The notes under the pieces: model-generated | Told to the model about the DNA's origin: nothing | Seen by the model: the letters and a program-made list of their open reading frames with translations, nothing else | The model's database searches: none | Made by a program: the position numbers and the translations under genes | NCBI GenBank assembly: GCA_907165135.1 | Contig: OU015568.1 | Location: 10,230,001 to 10,294,000 of the forward strand | Reading direction: 5' to 3' | DNA from: Oikopleura dioica | Lineage: Eukaryota; Animalia; Chordata | Length of the DNA: 64,000 nt | In this document: positions 1,797 through 44,974 of the stretch, piece by piece | How positions within the stretch are numbered: the stretch's first letter is position 1 | Layout of the letters: each line of letters begins with the position of its first letter

Positions 1797-3882
1797 ATGA
1801 AGTACATTCTGGTCCATGGCGGGGTCATATCTGGCGTAGGAAAGGGAATCATTTCTTCTTCCATCGGCACATTGATGAAGTCAATCGGTCTGCGAGTAAC
1901 GGCCATAAAGATCGACCCTTATATTAACATTGATGCCGGTACTTTCAACCCTTATGAGCATGGAGAGGTAGATCCACCATCTTGTTCCTTGTTTTGACCT
2001 TTTTAATAGACCTACGTCCTAAATGACGGTGGAGAATGCGATCTCGACCTTGGAAACTACGAGAGATTCATCGGCTTGAGCCTTACAAAAGACAACAACA
2101 TAACAACAGGCAAAATGTACTCAGAAGTAATTCAAAAGGAGCGAAACGGAGACTATCTCGGGAAGACAGTTCAAATTATTCCTCATGTGACCGATCACAT
2201 AATGAACACAGTCGAGCGTGTGGCAAAGCTGCCTACAGATGGTACCAATCTTGAACCAGAAGTGTGTATTATCGAGCTTGGAGGAACTATCGGCGATATT
2301 GAATCAATGCCTTTTGTTGAGGCGTTCCGTCAGTTTGAATTTAAAATTGGAAAGGAAAATTTCATGAATTTGCATGTTTCGCTTGTTCCTACTCCTGGAT
2401 CAGGTAGAATTTCAATCAGCGGCGAATGTACTTTGTAATTGCCGTAATAATGTCTCTTTGATGATTAATTTTTCCTTCATTAGGAGAGCAGAAAACAAAG
2501 CCGATTCAAAATTCGGTTCGCACGCTGCGTGGTCAAGGATTGTCCCCCGACATGATTGTATGCCGCTGCAAATTAGCGCTGGAAGACTCAACAAAGCGTA
2601 AAATTTCACAGTTTTGCAGCGTCTCCGTCGACCAGGTCATTTCCGTCCACGATGTCGGGTGAGTTAACTACCCTCAATTTCCTGCTAATTATCGCTGTAA
2701 TTTTGTAGATCAATCTACCGCGTGCCACTGATCCTACATGAGCAGAAAGTTACCAAGTTTATCCGCGAGCGATTACAGTTGCCGAAATATGTGGGATCAA
2801 AAAACACTTTGAAAAAGTGGCGAGCATTAGCGATCAAGTCCGAAAAATCCTTCAAAGAAGTGACCATTGCTTTTGTTGGAAAATACATCCAACTTGAGGA
2901 TGCGTATGTTTCAGTCATCAAAGGTTTTTTCATGATAATAATTTGATAATTCTGAAACAATCGATTCTAGCCTTGAAACACTCTGCCCTTGCGATCAACA
3001 GAAAGCTCGTTATAAAATTCATCGACTCCGAAGACTTACAGAATGAGGCCAAACTCGGTCACCCCGCTCGTTATTACGAAGCTTTTCAAAAACTCTGCTC
3101 CGCAGATGGGATTCTCGTCCCTGGAGGCTTCGGGACCCGAGGCACAGAGGGAAAGATCACAGCCATCAACTGGGCACGAGAGCATAAGATTCCCTTCCTT
3201 GGAATCTGCCTTGGCATGCAACTGGCTGTAGTTGAGTTCGCTAGAAATGTTATGGGACTCGAAGGGGCGAATTCAGCTGAGTTTGATCCACAGACGAAAC
3301 ATCCAGTCATTATTTCGATGCCTGAACATCATACAGTAAGATGCAGTTTAATGAGATTAGAAGCTAAATCATTTGATTCTAGGGCGTTATGGGAGGAACA
3401 ATGAGATGTGGTCAACGAACGACCATCTTCAAAGATAAAGATTGTGTAATGTTCAAAATGTATGGAAAGCAGGAAAAGATTTCCGAGCGTCATCGTCACC
3501 GGTAAGTATGATTGGAGAATGACAAGTTTTGAATGGTTGTCTTAGATACGAAGTGAATCCAGATTTTGTCCAAGAAATTGCAGCACAAGGACTCAAATTC
3601 GTCGGCGAAGATGTCGACGGCGAGCGCATGGAAATCATCGAGCTCAAGGATCACCCGTTCTTCGTCGGGCTCCAAGCGCATCCCGAATTCGAAAGCAGAC
3701 CGCTCAAACCAAGTCCGCCTTATTTGGGCCTTCTGCTCGCCAGCATCAAGAAATTGGAAAACTACTTGACCAACGGATGCAATTTGAACACCGACGTGAT
3801 TGGAGATGACTCGGACGAAGAGTATTTGCGAGAAGAGGACTTTAGCAAGCTGATGTTAGACGACGTCAGGAAAAGGGACTGA
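1797..3882 (+). CDS. CTPS: CTP synthase (multi-exon)
   Basis: [57 protein letters not shown] (catalytic Cys), QAHPEF (His-Glu of the GATase triad). Confidence 0.97.
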
Positions 3883-4680
3883 AAAGCAATTTCTCACGGG
3901 AGTTTTTAGGATCGGCAGTCATCAGCGAGCAGACGCGCTTCTGCTGTCTCAGCGTCGCCAGCTTCGTCAGAGACCGAGTGAAAATGAAATGTTTGTAAAT
4001 AGAAAATTATCCGAATTCCGGAACTGGTGAAAACACGCTCTCTTGGTGACAATCAAATCGTACTAATTCAATCCCTTGAAAAAGACATGCAAAAATGAAA
4101 CGCGAAGTTGAAGAGAAACAGATCAAGTCTGAAAAGTGATTCCGCTGCTTTATTTGTCATTTTCCCCAAGTTCATCTAGCTAGCTTATTTTAATAATTCA
4201 AAGTCAAACCCAAACAGTCAAATGTTGACTACAAAGAATATATAATTAAATATTATATAGAGAGGTCGAACACAGAAACACACTCAACAATAGGATTTTC
4301 CAATTACTGCCCGAGCTCGTTTATTGAATGAAAACAAACAAAATCATAATCAAATCTCAAACACAATAAATTTCAAGCACGAACACACCAAAATCTTCAT
4401 TTTAAATCGATTAAAATGAAAGAAGCTTTGATATTTTATCGCAGGAAGAAGATGCAGGGCCGCTAATTTTTACGCAGAAATGGCAATCGCACTTTTGATT
4501 GCATTAATCGCCTCTGTTTACGAGAGGAGGAACCGGTCTGTCGCTTTGAAACTGTACGCGTTAACCAGGGTCATTAGGTAGCCCAAGCTGAACACACATG
4601 CGCGCCCCCTACTCGCCAATTTGCCTTCAAGTACCCGTGGAATTCTTGCTCCTCCAACAGATTATCGAACTCTCGAGAAA

Positions 4681-6047: not shown

Positions 6048-9000
6048 TTATGGAAGAGTCGGAGTTTTTATTCTAAAGAATTTTAGCAAAAATTTTCCGG
6101 TAAAACCTAACCTCGAGTAGTGCTCTTCATGAAGAATCTCGATCGACTTGAAATTAAAGATGAATCGGTAGAAAATTCCGAAGCTTCCCATAAGAACGAT
6201 AATGCCGAATAATATCAGAAGTAATCTATCGATAACAAGCGCTACAAAAGCCCAATCATCGAGTTGCGTGCTCGTCTCGTCTTCTTCCTTCTCATGATCC
6301 GCTATCATTCGGATTATTCTATTGCTGTAGATGACTCTGTCCATCGAAATTCCAGCCATGATTTTTGATTGCCGACTTATGCGTCGTTGGCGGCCTGATG
6401 TGATTGATGTTGTTGATCCTCTTTTGTTGGGTTGTTGTTTATTTCAAGACTTCGAAATAAGCAAATTCAACCCCTCCTGTGAGCATCTCTTCGAGGCATC
6501 ATCTCGGAAGCCTCTGCCACTCTTCTAGCGACGTCTTCAATAATGCTCATTGCTTCATCATCTGTATCACTGTCCCTCATCGCCCCTGAGCCTGAGATCT
6601 CCCGAATCTCTTTTGCTGTCAGAATCTTTTTCTCGAAAACACTCGGTCTTGGAGCTCTGTTTGGCATGTCTTTAGGTCCACTTGCATGCTGAGGTGCATG
6701 TGTGAGTAAGTCAATCTGGTCCTTGTCGATTGAAAATCTGTATCCGATCGGGAAAGTTGGTTTTTCTTTCTTTGGTCGTTCGATGAGCAGATATCTTGGG
6801 AGCACATTGAGGAAGATGTGACGGATCCAGCCATGAAACTGATGGGTTGCTGGTGAGCGATGATGGATATTGCAGACGATTACAGAAGTAACGATACTCA
6901 GTCCAACCAGGATCATTGAGAACAAAAGGTACTTAGTTAGGGGACTTATTTCCCGAAAAATAATGCATATTTTTACAAGTGCTATTATATAGAACCCTTT
7001 CCTTTGAAATGATAGGAACCTCATAAGAAGATCTTGGCGTGATATAGGAGACGAGAGTCTAAATACCCTGTTGACATGGCGGACAGGTGCTGAAACATGA
7101 TGATCTTACCAGAAAGTAAGTGAGAGTCAACAGGGTTGAGATTGACAGTGTCACTTTTTCGCCACCTACTGAGGGAGACTACATATCGGATTTTTTTTCT
7201 TTCATTTCATGCAGAACTTTAACTAGAAAAAATCCCATTCATGAAAGACAAAAACAACCAGTCCGGTGACACAAATTGTTGGGACGATTATATACAGCGT
7301 ATAATAAAGCGGCAAACGACTGAGAAAAACAGTGAAGCACACCTGATTTGCGGGTTAAAAATAAATCTATACAAAATCTATTTTCAGGAAGCTCTGAACC
7401 CGAAATAAGTTATATTTTTAGTTCCGTGTTGGGTCCACTCTTCGAGGGTCTGTTCCCATACTTTCACTCCACTCACTTCCCATTCTATATGAGACTGGAT
7501 CTTTGCCATGTTCTCTTGAGCATATTCTTCGAAGTGGATATCCAGCTCTTCCTCTTCGTATACCCACGATTTAAACATGAGAGTACACGCCTTATTGAAC
7601 AAGATAACGAAAACACGCTTGTTGGGAACTTCTACCTGGATATCATATGGAAACTGCTTGACCCTGAGATCGCAGTGCGCCTTGTATATCGACAACGGAT
7701 TCCACGTTACTTTCCCTGACCAATCAACCCTAGCCTTCGTCTCTGCTAGAGACGGCATGAACATTCCATCGATATTATTGTACAGGACTATCTCAGGATT
7801 CCACAATTCTTCGGACGAGACATGAATATACTCGCTTCCGCCGTATTCATCCTTGTTCCATACTAGACGTTCCTCCATCCAAGTTTGTCTGATGTCCATT
7901 CGAAGCTCGATCGTTGAGTCCGTTTGGGAAAGAGCTAATACTTGCTCTAATACAGGAGAGACTGTCCATGGATACTATTTTAATTATACAATCTGCTGAA
8001 GAGTTTAGATGAGCAAATGTATAGATTTCATAAAATAAAGAAAAGCCGGTACTTTGAATACGAAGCAGAGGCCTCTTATTGCTGGGAATTTCCAATTGAG
8101 TACAAAAAACACGAGTTTCATGGACCCGGATATTCATGATTATCTTCAGCTCAAGATAAATTCACAATTATCATGACATTCTTCGCTGAAATGGAACGGA
8201 ACGAATTTACGAAAGCATCCGTTTTCTTTAATTTTGATCTTCTTTCCTGGTTGTTCTGTTGGCTTGAAGATCTTGTTGTACTCTCTCAGAAGATGACAAA
8301 CACTCTGAGCCTTTCTTTTAATCCGAGTAAAAGTCAGTTTCCGATTTATGAGTTTGTTGTCGCTTCCTGTTAGTAAATCTTCGCGAAGTAATTTTTGGCA
8401 AGCGGTGTATTTCAACCCTTCGCATTTGTCCTTTAGTTCGTCGAAAATATAATCCCCGAAAATATCGTCTGATCCAGGGCTGGTAAATTAGCGCACTATT
8501 TTCTCTCGAAGAAAAAAAAATTAGCGCACTAATATTTTTTTAGAGACATTTTCGCGTCTTTCGCGCCTTTAGTGCACTAAAATGACACTAATTTTTCCTC
8601 TTGGGGAAATTAGTGACTTTTCGAGAGCCGATCAGCACTAAAGACGCGAAAAAAGAGGCTCTTTTTCATCATCCAATAGGCTCTTCCCGGATGATAGTTT
8701 CATGGAAGACGATTTTGATCAGGGAAGAATTTCTTCAAACTGAAACTGCTAGTATATAAAAATCAATGCATCGTAAATATGACACAATTTAATAAAAAAA
8801 AATTACTTATTTAGTAACAAATATGTTGAAAAGAATAAAAGTCAACTTTTGTTGGAAATTCTTTTTGTCGAGTTAAATGATGAGGTAAGATAAGCTTTGC
8901 TAGGGACAGGGTTTGAAATCTGAAAATTTTGCGTGAGCACGAGCACGCGTGAGCACGGGGATGCTAAAATTTTCGTGAGTATGAGCACGCGTGAGCATGC

Positions 9001-10207
9001 TCATTGAGCTCACTCACGTGCTCATGAACAGCTCATGCTAACGCTCCTCTCCCTAATTTTTTTATCGCAGGGCCATCCGCAGCTGGATCTTCCTGCTTTT
9101 CATCATTTTTTGCCTTTCTTCTTCTTGTCGTTGTCCTTCTCATCGCTGTCTTCAAGGAAGCCAGAGCAGCGTTGACTGATACGTGGTCTAAGAGCTCTTC
9201 TCAGTATCATTATATGATTCTTTATTCACAGAATCATATTTATTTGATAATTTAGAAGGGAGGTCTCCTCCGAAATTCACGCTTACTTGATAACTGCTAA
9301 TGAAGAACTCCTCCCAAAGTTTTTATTTAGTTTTCTAGGATAAAGGCTATCATATAACGTTGTAATTTTTTATAATAAATTGTATTGGGAGGAAATCTGC
9401 TTTCTTGATTACAAGGTAAGCATGAACTTGGGAGAAGATCTCCCTTTTGATTTTTTAAATATATATCATTTTGTTAATAAAGAATTATATCAACAATTCG
9501 CACAAGGCTGCTCCAGCTGCAGACTTTTGAGGACACCGAAATTAGTCGAACAACGACAAGAAGAAGATTGACAAGAAAGGGAAAAAGCAGGAAGAACAAG
9601 CTGCGGATGGCCCTTCAATAAAAAAAATTAGGGAGACGACCTCCCTAAGAAAGCTTATCTAAGGCTAAAAGTCTAACCTTATCATTCAAATCCAGCACAA
9701 AAAGAGTTGCAAACAAAAATTGAATTGTTTTTTTCCCTATATAATATATTCCCTATATTTGTTACTTTATATTCATAAAGAAAATTAACAAATGAATTGA
9801 CAAAGTCTTTTTTGACCTTATATTAAAATTCACGCCCTCAATTACCCAATACACATTATTGAAACCAAACTTTTTGAAATTCTAATATTAGCGAAGTTTG
9901 AAATTCTCAAACTTACGTATTCTTTAGAATTAAAGAGCCCGCGCTCATTGGCGGGCCAATCAGCAGCCTTTATTTTCGACACTTTTCGAGACTCACGCGA
10001 AAGAGACGCGAAAGTCACTAAAGTCTCGACAAAATAAATTCGCGCACTAATTTTAGTGCACTAAAAATTTTCGACAGATTTTAGGACGCGAATTTACCAG
10101 CCCTGGTCTGATCCATAATCTGGCAAATAAGAGCTTCCATAATTGAGCATGGGTTCGTAATATTTCTGTGAAACAACCAAGCCGAAAACATAAAGAAAGC
10201 TTCTCAT
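6048..10207 (-). CDS. Nicotinic acetylcholine receptor subunit, non-alpha (Cys-loop channel); first coding exon interrupted by a hAT element
   Basis: Signal peptide MRSFLYVFGLVVSQ at 10207; KLLREDLL..YNKIFKP; Cys loop CDLRVKQFPYDIQ|AC; M1 LPLYYTLYIIVP; M2 GEKVTLSISTLL; HHRSP; M4 WAFVALVIDRLLL. No vicinal CC in loop C. Confidence 0.88.
7179..7240 (-). other. Non-canonical GA-AG intron (62 nt) in the nAChR M1-M2 linker
   Basis: VFVFH|gaatggg...atgtag|SPSVGGEK is required to keep the frame. The interval is not a multiple of 3 and contains an in-frame TAG; no GT donor gives this join. Confidence 0.75.
8475..10105. mobile_element. Non-autonomous hAT-type DNA transposon (1631 bp)
   Basis: 15-bp TIR CAGGGCTGGTAAATT at both ends; exact 8-bp TSD GTCTGATC (8467-8474 and 10106-10113); subterminal TAGTGCACTA/GCGCACTAA repeats; no transposase ORF. 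Confidence 0.93.
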
Positions 10208-11499
10208 GATTTCTCTTGGGCGTTTTTGCTCTTGAAGTGATAGGGAAAAAAGGGATGAACAATCGCCGCTCACACAGGGAACGAGATTATTTTTGATTTA
10301 TCCACAATTGTCATCAGAGAGGAAAGCTTATCAGCTCTTTAGAGCGTACTTAAACCATTTCATTTTGTTTATAGCTTGTTGTTCTTTGATTTTATGGGAT
10401 AAGCCGATAAGTAAGTTCGAACATCGAAAAAGCAGAGGGATTTGCAGTTGTAAAATTCAAACAATTTAATCGAGTGTAAATGAGAATGCATCTTTTTAGG
10501 TTCTCATAAAAGGCGATAAGACTTTCAGCGCTACTTCAGCTATGATATGAAAACTGCAGATTCAGCGGAATTTTTTATTCCTAAATTTTCTTTAAAGCTT
10601 TTAGTTATATTTAATTCTTCGGCTGTATTTAAACTTGATAAACTTTTTAAAGAACTCTGGAGCGATAATTTATGGGCGAAAAATGAAAGTCGGAAAATTG
10701 TTGAAAAGGTCAAGGATCTTGAAGGAACCGTCCGTGTTTCACGGCGCACGGTGTTTATCTTCTTCGCTGCTGCTCCGGACGTCGATATCTTTCTGAGCGG
10801 AAAAAGGGGATGCCGCCGGTTGCAGTTCCTGATCCGAATTGGCGATAAGTCGCGCGATAAAGGAACCTAAAGGAAGGAAGGATGCGACAGAGATAGGGAT
10901 TGGCACGGACGAGCACTTGGCGCCTTTTGTAAATGAGGCCCCGCGGGGACCGGAGCTCCTTCTTATCAGTTTCCGCAGCTCTCGTCCTGCCGAATTCAAC
11001 ACTTGCTTCAATTAACTCTTCTTCGTGTGATTCCAAATACCATAAATGTACGGAAAAACTGAAAAAGCAATGTTTAAATTAATTGAATGTGAGTATTTTT
11101 ATTAGCTTGTACATAGTTAGGGACCAATATGGAGTATTATTTAGGCAGTCCGGTAAATATGTTTCAGTGATTTACCAAGTTTATGATCTCCTCAGTCTTG
11201 TCATCTGCTAGCACATGTACAGGAAAATCGAATGTAGCGAAGAATCGCTTGAGACACATGTCTAGAGCTCGATCGCCGATTCGGACAATAAGACCTATAG
11301 GTTGATATCAACTTGAACACCCTTTTCAAAAACCTCAGCGGTGCAGGTTGTTCGCGATCCCGGATCAACTCAATTCAAAGAATCCACAGCTCTAGAAAGA
11401 GCTCTTGAAAGATGATGGCGTTGAAAAACTTCGATGATATCTGGTTTCCTCTATCCGGGGCCTCATGTCCGTAATTGTACCGATAAGCTTCCAGGATGT

Positions 11500-14400
11500 C
11501 GGAACCCGGCTCGCTGATAAGGATTCCCTCTCCACCGGAATGCGCCATGTTCGGCCTCTTGTTGCGAACCCTACACGAGCCTCTTGTCCAGCTGATATGC
11601 GCCCTTTTCCGTTTGAAACAAAAGTCTAAATATTGCCCCGATTTTCCTGCTGTAAATAAAATATTGTCGTTCTCAGCTTTATTCTGCCCAGGAAGTGAAT
11701 AATGGAAAGAAACAAACTTGGAAAGTCCGGTTCGGCTCTTCCTCTCCCGGTGCCGTAGCTAAACAGCGCAATTATTCTCCCCTTTGATGCGAGCGGAAGC
11801 GACCCTTTTTGCGCTACCGAGACGCAGCCAAAACCGGAAATTGTCGCGGCCCAATCTCGGTATTTTACCTTTTTCTTCTCCAGCGAAGGCTTTTTGATAA
11901 GTACTAATCTAAAAGAACCCAATATGAATTAAATTACAATAAGTTCTTTCGTTAGGAAACTTATAAGTTATAACTTATAGTAGGTAGTTTCCGTCAATGT
12001 TAATAGACATCAACTGAGTTGATAGAGCGATCATCATATAAATTGATAGAGCGAAGAAATAGGGGTGGATTCAAAAGGAAGAAGTGAGAACTCCGGAAGG
12101 CCCGTTGCGATTTGCGCCTCGCTTTATAGCTACCGCGGCGGAAATTTGCTGACTTTTTTTGGCTTCTTCATATTTCCCTGCTCTTCGTGCCCTTTGTAGT
12201 AACGAATCGCTTCTCGGTGGGATTTCTTCTTCTGGCGTCGAGAGGAAGTAGGTTCGGAAGTGAGCTGCTTCCTAGTCAGCAGCACCGCGATTGAGTTATT
12301 TGGCTTCCAGAGTGTAAAAACCGAAGCCAGGAAATGGGGTAGAAGCGATTTCCTTTCCGACGGGTGTTACCCGCCGGTCGGGCAAAGGCAGTTCCGAGAG
12401 AATGGAGGGAACGGGATTTCCAGTTCTCAACTAGTGCCAGTGCCTGATCCACAAGGGGTTAAAGCACACTTCAAGACTCAACAAGCAGAAATAGATTTGA
12501 CTGCATTGTGATTTTGAGGATTTTTCATCACTCTTTTTTTACTATCATTTTTATGCTACCAAACTTATAATAGATTTTTCTTTGTCGAATAAATAATAAT
12601 CTTTATTTATTAAAATTCAAAAATAAGCCGGATAATTCGGATCACCTCTCCGGAAATCAATTCCTTTTCAGGAAATACGAACCAGCGCATGATTTTCATA
12701 TGAGGCAGTAGTCATGAATGGCAGGGTGTCTTATTCGGATTTTTACTTCCGGGATGATTGAGACCCAGACTGTCCCGGATTAATCAAAAATTCAAACTGT
12801 ACAGCCGGAGTCGATATTTAGTCTATATTTAGAATGAAAACGGAGGTGCAAAGATCCAAGTCCGGTCGATTCACTGAAGGGATCCATCCTCGGGGTTGCC
12901 GCAGTCACGGTGGCGCCCGTTCGCGCTCTAGCCCAGCGCTGGCCCCTAACGCGCAGGAGAGCTCCAGCACATCGTTCGCGCCAGCCGGATAAACCACCAA
13001 CACACTCACAAAGCTTCATTCACAAAAAGTAAAAAGTTAAACAAATACATCTGCATATTTTCCATCGACAGAGATTGACCTCTTGACAAGAAGGAAAAAA
13101 GAGATTTAGGAAGAAAAGAAGCGACCAGACGGTTCGTCGCGCCGGATAGGAGCCGGAAAATTTCACGCTGAAGAAAGAAGATGGAAGTGATCAAGATCGA
13201 GACGCCAGGGGCTGATGCTACTAAGACAAACCCTTTGGCCACCTTCGAAGCTAGCCAGCTGATCCCAACTGTGATGCCAGTCGCAGCGCCATGTTCTACC
13301 CCGTCGCCACCATCGCCGAAGCCTGCACCCGCTGTTTCCGCCGCATCAATCCCGTCGTACGAAGCAAAAGGTAATTAAAACTAACAACGGTAATTTCTGG
13401 AGCTCTTCTCCAGCGGAAGAGGTCTTGGAATCAGCACAATGCCACTCTGCGGGGCCCTTCATTTTTGCGAAAAACAAAAACGCCGCCGCCGCGACACGGA
13501 AGTCCGCTCGTCGACAGTAAAAACTTGTCAACGAGGCGATTTCCGGGACGTTGAATAGACCAGTTCCGTCGGACACGCAACGGCAGTGCTCGGGACAGAG
13601 CTTGCTTTGTGAGGTCTGTTGCTTGTGGCCAGATAGCGGAGTTTTCTCAAGTGTTTTTTTTCATTTCAATTTTATCATTTGATGATTCGTCAATCAAGAT
13701 TATTTTAAGAATATTAAAGATTTTTCCATTTATTAATTTTTCTACTTGTACTATCTATCTGGTCAAAAGGTGAATTTGACAAAGAATTAACAATAAAATA
13801 AGGGTATCCTAATCTTATTTTAGTTCTTTCTGCAGAATAGCATGAATAATGTCGGATTTTTATTTGTCTTCGAGAGTAACACGTGATAGGGGTTATAGTT
13901 GCCGGGGAGCTGCTTTTGATAGATTCCGGAACTGGGCTGATTCCCATTGTCAGCCGGCTTGTATCCGGGGTGAAGCTCTCGCGGATGGAGTGAATATTTA
14001 TGCGCCTTTCCGGGATGTTGAATAATCTATCGAGTCCACGACTACTCTCATGTCTCGCCCTGCATCTTTTATGCCTTCCCTATCTTTTCAGATGTAATCA
14101 TGGAATCAGAATGCAAACAAAGTCGGATTTCCGAGTTGCATTTTTCACAAGCTTCCAGGCTGAATTTGAAAGTTGAATTGATAACGAAGGTGTACGCTAA
14201 TCGGAAGACTTTAATAAGCGATTATGGTCGGAGTCAGCTGATCGGGGCTGGACTTGAAAATTTGTCCCGATCAGCTGGAGATTAGTTTATTGGAATTTCT
14301 CCAATTCTTTCGAAAAGGACTGAATACGTCCGCTCGTCGGTGGTGCTGGCTGACATTATCCGCCGCGCCAATCTGATTAAAGTTATCTTTCGCGCAGCAT

Positions 14401-41994: not shown

Positions 41995-44974
41995 GAGTTT
42001 AGTTGGCTCTGGTGGCAACTTTTTCTTCGACAAACCGAAGCCCAAGCCAAAGCCTGTTGGTGAGTTTGAAGTACAGAAGAGTCTGGGGACAATTACTGGT
42101 CTAAGGCGCGGAGTTTGAGTTACTTTTTGATTTTTTTCTTTTTATTGATATTTTTCTCTTGAAAATATAATCTTTGATAACCTCTGGAAAGATGCAAACC
42201 CTTGGCACAACCTCCTGGTACTCGAATGATGTGTTCAAAGGGAATTTCTGAAGATTCAATTTGTACAGTTATTTGTGACGAGATCAAATCTGGTTTCGGC
42301 ATGGGAAGCCAGGTTTGCGCTTGTGCGAAGATGTTCAAAGGACCCGTGATGATTCCTCTTGGGTGCAGTTGGAAAGGAGCGATGCCCGACTGTGTTGTCC
42401 CAGGAATGGATGGGATATTTTTCCAATTATTCTTGCCTCAAATATTTTCTCTTCGCTGCAGAATCTATAATAACTGTGTAAATTATCATCCTTTCAAGAA
42501 GAAGAGCCAGTTGCCAATGCTCTCGCGGGAAGAAGCTTGCATAAGGCACCAACAACTCAAGTTGCAAAGTCAACAACGACAACGACAATGAAACCGACTT
42601 CAACAACAACAACGACAGAAACGACAACTAGTACTACGACAACATCCACCACTAGCACCACCACGACAACGACAACAAAGAAGACAACTACTGCATCAAC
42701 GACTACTACAAAATCGACCACAAAAACTAGTACTACGACAACTACGACAACTACTACAACTACGACATCGACGACATCAACAACTTCAAAGGCAAAAACA
42801 ACAACAACCTCTACGACGATCACTACGTCTACGACTACAACGACTACAACTACCACTACAACGACTACAACAACCACAAAAACCACCACTACAACAACAA
42901 CCACAACGACGACTTCTACAACAAGTACCGTTTCTAGCACCACGACAGAAGAATACGTTATTCTTCATGATATTGAAGTAAACTATACTTCTACATCTCC
43001 AGCTCCCAGCACACAATACGCAGCTGAATTTGATTGGGCTGAAACAACAGAATCACCTTACAGCATAATTTACGAATTGGAAGAAGAAACATCCTCCACT
43101 GCACCACCAACAACTGAATCGATCGTTTCCTCAACAGAATCATTTATAGAGCTGGAGACAGAAGCACCTATCAACTGGGCTCGAAGAATCAAGGGAAATA
43201 AAAAAGACTGGCAAGCATTCTTAGATGGAACTTCCACAACTGCGCAATCAACGACTACTGAATTTGCCACAACAACAATCCCCGCATCCACGAGTATCTA
43301 TACTACTGTGACGACAGAAGCCCCAGCCACAGCTCGAAATCCAAATCGTTTCAAAAACGAGTTCAACACAAATACTGGTTTGGATCGAAATTCAGCAGAT
43401 CGGGACTCGATTCATAAGAAAATTGATAAGCCTGCTTGGGCAGAGAAGCTCATTGTTCCAGAAACACGTCCTCTTCTTGAACGACCGATCAACAACGAGC
43501 GTGTTGAAAAGTTCAAAGATTATGATGACTACAGTGCAAAGCCAATTCCACCTGGAACAGTTGCTATGGCGGTCAAAGAAGTGATGGAGCCAGAAACAGC
43601 GTCATTGCCTGTTGATGAACCTCTTGTTGTTCAGTCTGAAGATAAGTCTGCCATCACTTTCTATCCGTCGTTGCTAAAAGAGACCTTCAATCAGCTCCCT
43701 GGATTGAGCAAACTGGAAGTTTCGCAGCTCCTCAACAAATTTTTGACAGAATACAAGGTGAATATGATAAAACTTCGAAGTTCCAGAGTCTTTATAGAAG
43801 GTCATTGAAAACGAAATTATTCCTATGCGGCGTCAGTGTGGCATTACATCGTATATTGATTCTATTTATTTTTTAGGAAATTATCCATGACGATGTGGCC
43901 ACAACTGAGGAGCCAGTCAAAACCACAACGGAAATTTATACCACAGACTACACGAGCGCGATGACGACCAAAGGTGTTATCAATCCTTTCAAAGGTAGCA
44001 TAGTCTTGTCTAATGGAATTAAGCTTAAAATTGAAGGTTGCCCGAATTTGATCCCACCGGAAGATGGATTCTTACAGTATTCGGATGGACTCAATAGTGG
44101 CTCTATCGTGACTTACCTCTGTAGCAAGGGTTTTGAAATCAAGCAGAAAGGAGCTGAGCGAAAGGTAAAGAACAACTCTTCCAATTCAAAGAACTTAATC
44201 ATTTTTTTCAGTGCTTATGTGATAATAACGAGTGCGTCTGGTCAAAGAAGCCACGCGACTGCGAAAGAAAAGTCGGTGGTGGCACTGGAATCAGCGCTAG
44301 CGAGCGAGAACAGCGTCGCGAAGAGAAACGAAAACAACGAATTGAACAGAGAGAAAGGTCAGTTTTATGTGATTTTTTAGACTCTACGGAAATTAAATTT
44401 GTCGAATTAGATTCCACAAATGCTGATCTGTTTGATATGCATTGACCTTTACCTTCAGGGAGAAAATGGCCAGAGATTCTTTCAGTAGGAAGACGAAGAA
44501 ACAATCAAAGAAGCAAGCGTCGGCACCGTCAAGTACTTCTTGGGCTCGATCACTTGGTGGCGCAAGTATCGATACCAGCGGAGAATTCTTCAATAACTTG
44601 TTTGTCGAAGAAAATGATTTCTACAAAGAACAGACATATCATCACACTCCGACTTCTGCCCAAGCGAAAATGCCTACTTCTGCTAGATGTGAGCAAAGCT
44701 TTAAAATCTACTTTTTTATCCAATTTTTAGCCACGAATATGGTGGATACGACTTGTGATCCATTGAGCTTGGAACACGGGCAGATCTTCTGCTCGAATCA
44801 TTATAATGATGGGTCTAAGTGCACGCTCAGGTCAGTTTATTCCATCAATAATTTACCTATCTTATTCTTAGTTGCTTGCGAGGATTCAATTTACAATTTA
44901 CCGGTCGAGTAGTCCGGTGCGTTTGCACTCAAACTGGCTGTCATTGGAACAAACCCCCGCAGAAATGCGTATAA
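41995..44974 (+). CDS. Sushi/CCP-domain mucin-like protein; start codon not located
   Basis: Three CCP-like modules (CKPLAQPPGTRMMC...WKGAMPDC; CPNLIPPEDG...VTYLCSKGF; CDPLSLEHGQIFC...WNKPPQKC) around a long Thr-rich tract. Confidence 0.72.
42570..42950 (+). repeat. ACN-codon low-complexity tract encoding a poly-Thr mucin domain
   Basis: (ACA/ACT/ACG/ACC)n runs inside ORF 42537-43808. Confidence 0.9.

Follow-up and report, generated by a model that had tools for sequence, protein, structure and literature searches.

A young hAT-like transposon in the first coding exon of an Oikopleura dioica Cys-loop receptor gene, with candidate in-frame splice sites in its terminal inverted repeats

Results

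In the larvacean tunicate Oikopleura dioica, a Cys-loop receptor gene carries in its first coding exon a real cut-and-paste insertion of a young, non-autonomous hAT-like transposon, and the terminal inverted repeats (TIRs) of this element hold a candidate pair of canonical splice sites. The gene lies on the minus strand of a 64,000-nucleotide stretch of contig OU015568.1 (GenBank assembly GCA_907165135.1, positions 10,230,001 to 10,294,000), referred to here as the window, in whose coordinates all positions are given. The element, hairpin-shaped in layout, occupies positions 8475–10105 (1631 bp) and is bounded by the 15-nt TIR CAGGGCTGGTAAATT with no mismatch between its two copies (8475–8489 on the plus strand and 10091–10105 on the minus strand), the inverted repeat reaching 37 nt at 81% identity. 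The 8-bp target-site duplication (TSD) GATCAGAC, read on the gene strand, adjoins both ends at 10113–10106 and 8474–8467. Use of GT 10097 and AG 8480 as donor and acceptor in a meaningful share of the transcripts is, judged from the DNA, an evenly balanced proposition.

The insertion and its empty site

Used as the query of an exhaustive HMMER search, the downstream exon-1 part returned three short proteins, and a word-indexed search returned one more. All four homologues (P0007, P0001, P0002 and P0003) run uninterrupted through the insertion point, reading ...PDYGSDDIFGDY... in P0007, ...PDYGADDIFGDY... in P0001, and ...YGEQDYIFADY... and ...YGDQDIFADY... in the more distant P0002 and P0003, respectively. 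P0007 is encoded on the Tara Oceans metagenome contigs L002 and L003, which are 95–97% identical to the window, and P0001 on L001, a contig assembled from a public sequencing run. In BLASTN, L002 matches the window in two blocks that share 10 nt in the query, nucleotides 1–2077 aligning with 12189–10106 at 94.6% identity and nucleotides 2068–4285 with 8476–6262 at 97.2%. Removal in silico of the element together with one TSD copy renders the window identical to L002 and L003 across the junction, ...TATGGATCAGACGATATT..., while the empty site of L001 reads ...GGAGCAGAC...; in all three contigs the target is present once and the element is missing. The two-block match and the identity of the junction are what a cut-and-paste insertion leaves behind when it duplicates an 8-bp target. 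The preliminary description of this DNA had named an empty allele in other populations as something to look for, and it is seen in L001, L002 and L003. The element is missing at the orthologous position in these contigs and in P0002 and P0003, which is the pattern of recent gain used for introners (introns derived from transposable elements). The insertion is specific to a lineage or an individual, and young or polymorphic. The features of the locus are the following.

8475–10105, unstranded: non-autonomous hAT-like transposon, 1631 bp, 36% G+C, imperfect palindromic layout; missing from L001, L002 and L003
10106–10113, minus strand: TSD copy 1, GATCAGAC; single in L002 and L003
8467–8474, minus strand: TSD copy 2, GATCAGAC
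10091–10105, minus strand: TIR at the gene-5′ end, CAGGGCTGGTAAATT; holds the candidate donor CTG/GTAAAT, GT 10097–10096
8475–8489, plus strand: TIR at the gene-3′ end, reading AATTTACCAG/CCCTG on the gene strand; candidate acceptor AG 8481–8480
8491–8580, unstranded: left subterminal repeat zone, TAGTGCRC / GYGCACTA starting at 8491, 8524, 8570 and 8572
10042–10063, unstranded: right subterminal repeat zone, TAGTGCRC / GYGCACTA starting at 10042, 10054 and 10056
9045–9639, unstranded: long inverted repeat inside the element, about 68% identity across 626 nt, arms at most 91%; part of the whole-element hairpin
10106–10207, minus strand: upstream part of exon 1, ATG at 10207–10205, signal-peptide-like MRSFLYVFGLVVSQ, ending ...PDYGSD; includes TSD copy 1; collinear with the 140-aa open reading frame (ORF) P0007 and with P0001
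8151–8474, minus strand: downstream part of exon 1, DIFGDYIFDELKDKCEG...HLLREYNKIFKPTEQPGKKIKIK...; N-terminal extension and α1-helix-like stretch
6048–7962, minus strand: rest of the receptor gene, ligand-binding domain (LBD) with Cys-x13-Cys loop, M1–M4 and stop codon, from Pfam and sequence

The 2 kb upstream of the gene (10208–12189) match L002 at 94.6% identity; L001 covers 0.9 kb of them and matches at 91.8%. Wild marine metagenomes hold close relatives of the window genome and could serve for scoring the presence or absence of other insertions. In L001:1075–1263, which is 84–92% identical to the window, the exon-1 frame meets an in-frame TAG after 86 codons (...NRIKKS*), and small deletions are found close to where the exon ends on its 3′ side; in this more divergent lineage the N-terminal exon may be in decay or may be spliced in another way.

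The interrupted receptor gene

The host gene matches Pfam Neur_chan_LBD (E 1.9e-32) and Neur_chan_memb (4.2e-18 and 6.2e-07), and its Cys-x13-Cys loop is intact, reading CDLRVKQFPYDIQAC across the exon junction 7636/7590. On these matches the host is assigned as a Cys-loop ligand-gated ion channel gene, similar to nicotinic acetylcholine receptors (nAChR), and Pfam thereby supports the earlier proposal that the element interrupts exon 1 of an nAChR gene at the level of a Cys-loop, nAChR-like receptor. The minus-strand ORF opens at 10207 with MRSFLYVFGLVVSQKYYEPMLNYGSSYLPDYGSD, and its upstream piece (10207–10106) reads MRSFLYVFGLVVSQ...PDYGSD before the frame enters CAGGGCTGGTAAATT and halts at a TAA after QGW, three codons into the element. 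Past TSD copy 2 the same frame resumes with DIFGDYIFDELK.... No ATG is found in the downstream exon-1 frame, and nothing but a join across the 1631-bp element therefore connects the signal peptide in frame with the body of exon 1. The insertion point follows the signal peptide and precedes the first helix of the extracellular domain.

The receptor gene apparently uses non-canonical introns, on the minus strand at 7340–7400 and 8140–8170. After ...NITYFGFR the only phase-0 donor is a GC (AGA/GCTTCC, about 7396), joining cag/GTGTGCTTC at about 7341, and exon 1 has two candidate donors at its 3′ end, a weak GT at 8165 and a GC at 8150. Approximately 30 residues (...LTGSDNKLINRKLTFTRIKRKAQSVCHLLRE...) shared by the window and P0007 (alignment columns 80–110, window 8270–8370) are missing from P0002. 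Repeated LLRE flanks the gap, and TACTAACAG occurs in the window DNA at this place; an in-frame indel or an intron specific to one lineage could account for the difference.

Structure and affinity of the element

The element is poorer in G+C than its surroundings (36% versus 41%) and displays no coding capacity, its longest stop-free stretch extending over 75 aa and its ORFs returning no significant Pfam match (best E 0.013, under the cut-off). Its two halves are imperfect reverse complements of each other. A nested element at 9045–9639 was considered and ruled out, as the inverted pairing continues outside that interval (8808–8906 with 9642–9771); the whole element is therefore one imperfect hairpin. 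The minimum-free-energy fold predicted for 1711 nt of pre-mRNA is likewise a single long hairpin of −607 kcal/mol in which the TIRs pair base for base. Two 32-nt direct repeats, GTGAGCACG-rich, 88% identical and 42 nt apart, are located at 8924–8997, within a 140-nt stretch that is unpartnered in the opposite hairpin arm. Elsewhere in the window CAGGGCTGGTAAATT has two further matches with three mismatches, which is the chance level (expected 1.4), and no second copy of the element is present within the 64 kb.

The TIRs of hAT transposons are short and begin with 5′-YARNG, a consensus that the CAGGG ends of the element fit. The hAT target consensus is nTnnnnAn; at this one site, GATCAGAC agrees through the A at position 7 and departs from it at position 2, which is not T. 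The octamer TAGTGCRC / GYGCACTA occurs seven times in the window, every copy lying at most about 100 nt from an end of the element. Short subterminal repeats are the binding sites of hAT transposases, and the TAGTGCRC repeats fit this arrangement as putative transposase sites. Taken together, the 8-bp TSD, the CAGGG ends and the subterminal repeats suggest a hAT-like affiliation. The preliminary description had recognised a hAT-type insertion with an 8-bp TSD, and the presence of GATCAGAC on both sides and of TIRs perfect over 15 nt agrees with that view. At 1631 bp the element exceeds the length typical of MITEs (miniature inverted-repeat transposable elements; typically below 800 bp), though it is non-coding and carries TIRs and a TSD, and non-autonomous element is the better label.

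Splice signals in the terminal inverted repeats

The candidate splice pair on the gene strand consists of GT 10097/10096 and AG 8481/8480 and takes out 1618 nt. Joined in silico, the product reads ...PDYGSDQGCPGSDDIFGDY... with no stop and with QGCPGSD as the inserted residues. The predicted junction joins ...GACCAGGGCTG to CCCTGGATCAGAC (in a longer form, ...GGATCAGACCAGGGCTG to CCCTGGATCAGACGAT), with CAGGGCTG and CCCTG plus the TSD as the exon-side flanks of the predicted intron, while read-through enters GGTAAATTCG. The scar comprises 8 + 5 nt of TIR and 8 nt of TSD, giving 21 nt or 7 aa, a sum that applies to any insertion with these ends. The 13-nt residue CAGGGCTGCCCTG is stop-free in all frames; on reading its junctions, an exception could arise in the third frame at a target starting with A, where a TGA stop would form. 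All coordinates and sequence statements of the preliminary description hold when checked in the window. These include the immediate TGG TAA of the unspliced reading, which translates as QGW*, and a GT 10097 / AG 8480 pair that leaves 21 nt in frame with a footprint that is a multiple of 3, as the in silico joining confirms.

Every donor/acceptor pair that keeps the frame of the ATG open into the conserved NKIFKPTEQPGKK stretch was enumerated. Among the canonical GT-AG pairs only 10097/8480 retains the whole of exon 1, the other 14 deleting at least 39 residues. GT 10097 is the first GT past the exon on the sense strand, and no later donor is possible because the read-through stop lies directly behind it; similarly, no earlier acceptor is possible because of an in-frame TAA at 8490–8488. 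The nearest rival AG, that of the CAG in the TSD (8469), lies downstream of AG 8480 and yields a TGA with donor 10097. Exact excision of the element with one TSD as a canonical intron was ruled out, as it needs an AC-AG intron.

One 9-nt motif, CTGGTAAAT, encodes both donor and acceptor, its mirror at the far end being ATTTACCAG with the cut directly behind it, a YAG after a short pyrimidine run. GTAAAT-type donors also occur among the candidate short introns of the window, for example at 43073 in a heuristic list. The core splice signals are alike in both orientations, since the ends are identical for 15 nt, and differ beyond. The earlier claim that splicing would work in either orientation thus stands for the core signals, whereas the pyrimidine tract before the AG is weaker in the opposite orientation (4/8 versus 5/8).

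The frequency of such signals by chance was simulated with random 20-nt inverted ends, a strict pair being defined as a GTRAR donor and a YAG with at least 5/8 pyrimidines. Any in-frame, stop-free GT/AG pair arises in 8–9% of the trials and a pair of the observed quality in about 0.1%. The latter rate is suggestive in favour of the splice pair, short of proof.

Tolerance of the seven-residue insert

The alignment of the homologues displays an indel of 4–5 residues precisely at the insertion point. Codons that differ between the window and L002 comprise 7 synonymous and 7 non-synonymous changes in the N-terminal exon, compared with 11 synonymous and 0 non-synonymous changes in the LBD1 and TM3-loop segments. 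The gene is therefore constrained and otherwise intact, while the segment hit by the element is loosely constrained.

Discussion

The data are consistent with a transposon insertion that the host transcript may be able to remove. An unspliced transcript would end three codons inside the element. The spliceosome would pair GT 10097 with AG 8480 in at least part of the transcripts, removing 1618 nt, and the spliced mRNA would keep 21 nt (QGCPGSD) in an indel-prone segment under little constraint. Such an allele would be leaky or close to functional rather than null. In the folded pre-mRNA the hairpin of the element would bring both splice sites within 3 bp of each other, an arrangement that could help to define the 1.6-kb intron or could mask its sites.

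The strongest rival, which we hold to be a serious possibility somewhat short of even, is a plain loss-of-function allele. The insertion would be a recent hit, probably heterozygous or private to a strain, and its splice-like signals coincidental, being unused or used too rarely or wrongly. Several observations weigh against splicing. The pyrimidine tract of the acceptor is short, and in the minimum-free-energy fold a perfect duplex of 15 bp encloses the two splice sites, so that the predicted hairpin sequesters them. An intron of 1.6 kb is very long for a genome with a mean intron length of about 36 nt (bioRxiv 10.1101/2023.05.09.539028), and the insert brings an unpaired cysteine into the extracellular domain. 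No other sequence recovered, neither the three related contigs nor the distant homologues P0002 and P0003, has the element at this site, a pattern that a deleterious young allele would show too, and the perfect TSD and TIRs mark a very young insertion. In a very gene-dense assembly of one individual, some young exonic insertions are expected before selection purges them, and an in-frame GT/AG pair of any quality arises in 8–9% of random ends. In addition, no RNA-derived protein or contig of the receptor gene was found in the public collections searched. Queries of large protein collections with the N-terminal and ligand-binding exons returned only genomic or metagenomic ORFs, all reading into introns, annotated proteins of about 600 aa being outside the length range. 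Five window ORFs, among them three that run across an element junction, had no exact match. The predicted spliced junction had two matches in the JGI metagenome collection, both by chance in unrelated DNA, and a metagenome scan with the element end plus four bases gave none. Against a coincidence stand the quality of the in-frame, stop-free donor and acceptor, about 1 in 1000 for a random end, the position of 10097/8480 as the outermost usable sites and the intact remainder of the receptor gene.

Oikopleura displays a very high intron turnover whose source is unsettled. A stronger form of the splicing interpretation is that the family is a true introner, in which CTGGTAAAT evolved under selection and exonic insertions in either orientation and any frame become canonical GT-AG introns adding seven codons; it would contribute to this turnover, and we regard it as unlikely. 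A single motif supplies donor and acceptor, the core signals do not change with orientation and the footprint is a multiple of three, stop-free in all frames. The principle is established in Aureococcus (PMC9860276) and dinoflagellates (bioRxiv 10.1101/2020.10.14.339549), and the sister larvacean Fritillaria has MITE-derived introns (reviewed in PMC11282704). In contrast, the window holds a single copy and no old, fixed copy serving as an intron is seen in it, RNA evidence was not found in the collections searched, the acceptor is weaker in the opposite orientation, and 1.6 kb is far above the median lengths of introner families, 30–654 nt (PMC9860276).

Removal of the element by a non-canonical G[ACG]-AG splice is a slim prospect. 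As an example, GA donor 10113 with the AG of the TSD at 8469 would delete the element and 6 nt, turning ...YGSDD... into ...YDD.... There are 13 frame-preserving non-canonical solutions ending at 8480 or 8469, GA/GC/GG-AG sites are admitted when annotating Oikopleura dioica (bioRxiv 10.1101/2023.05.09.539028) and the receptor gene itself seems to hold a GC-AG intron near 7396; but a good canonical GT is available at the same spot and nothing singles out the weak sites. An assembly artefact that misplaced the element in the exon is scarcely credible, as an exact 8-bp duplication of a target that is single in L002 and L003, together with perfect TIRs, is the signature of real transposition.

If canonical splicing at 10097/8480 does take place, the birth of an intron would be directly observable in a laboratory chordate, with a polymorphic insertion, a defined junction and a defined 7-aa scar. 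Were the family a true introner, no canonical-splice introner would have been described in Oikopleura before it, and it would act as a source of the unusually fast intron turnover there. If the element is not spliced, it is an ordinary deleterious insertion, which mainly shows that assemblies of very compact genomes from one individual contain broken alleles, and that gene prediction may disguise these as introns.

Comparison with known systems

Exonic insertions of maize Ds and dSpm and of Caenorhabditis elegans Tc1 are removed from pre-mRNA by means of splice donors and acceptors located within or close to the element ends, and the resulting alleles are leaky. Maize Ds is itself a hAT element, with ends CAGGGATGAAA. 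Such splicing is usually imprecise, uses several alternative sites and is regarded as a by-product, whereas one symmetric motif in the Oikopleura element would give one defined in-frame product. The literature search found no paper describing such an element family in Oikopleura dioica, and Oikopleura is not mentioned in the text of the introner surveys PMC9860276 and PMC12130899. The principle is already published for algal and dinoflagellate introners. Of the interpretation offered in the preliminary description, the real insertion, the loss of frame without splicing and the canonical in-frame GT/AG in the TIRs stand, while the concept is not new (PMC9860276).

The introners of Aureococcus anophagefferens carry both splice sites and add codons, their remnant being 4 + 8 = 12 nt or 4 aa (PMC9860276, Fig. 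2F-G). Similarly, the Oikopleura element is a non-autonomous DNA transposon with an 8-bp TSD, both splice sites and a remnant that includes the TSD and is a multiple of three, and it is missing at the orthologous site in others. In contrast to the hundreds of short, RNA-proven Aureococcus copies, there is here one 1.6-kb copy in the window, with candidate splice sites, in an animal host. Both sites moreover lie within one palindromic TIR motif and the scar is 13 + 8 = 21 nt or 7 aa. The dinoflagellate introner-like elements of Polarella classes 6, 8 and 10 have an 8-nt TSD and form introns in either orientation (bioRxiv 10.1101/2020.10.14.339549). In these classes the TSD (GHN6) supplies one of the two splice sites and no footprint remains, whereas the Oikopleura element would use its own ends and leave 21 nt. 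A larvacean tunicate is also the host of the Fritillaria borealis introns, which are MITE-derived, carry TIRs and TSDs and occupy species-specific positions (Henriet et al. 2019, cited from PMC11282704). AG-AC or AG-AT borders prevail among the Fritillaria introns, which depend on a modified spliceosome, whereas the candidate sites of the Oikopleura element are canonical GT-AG.

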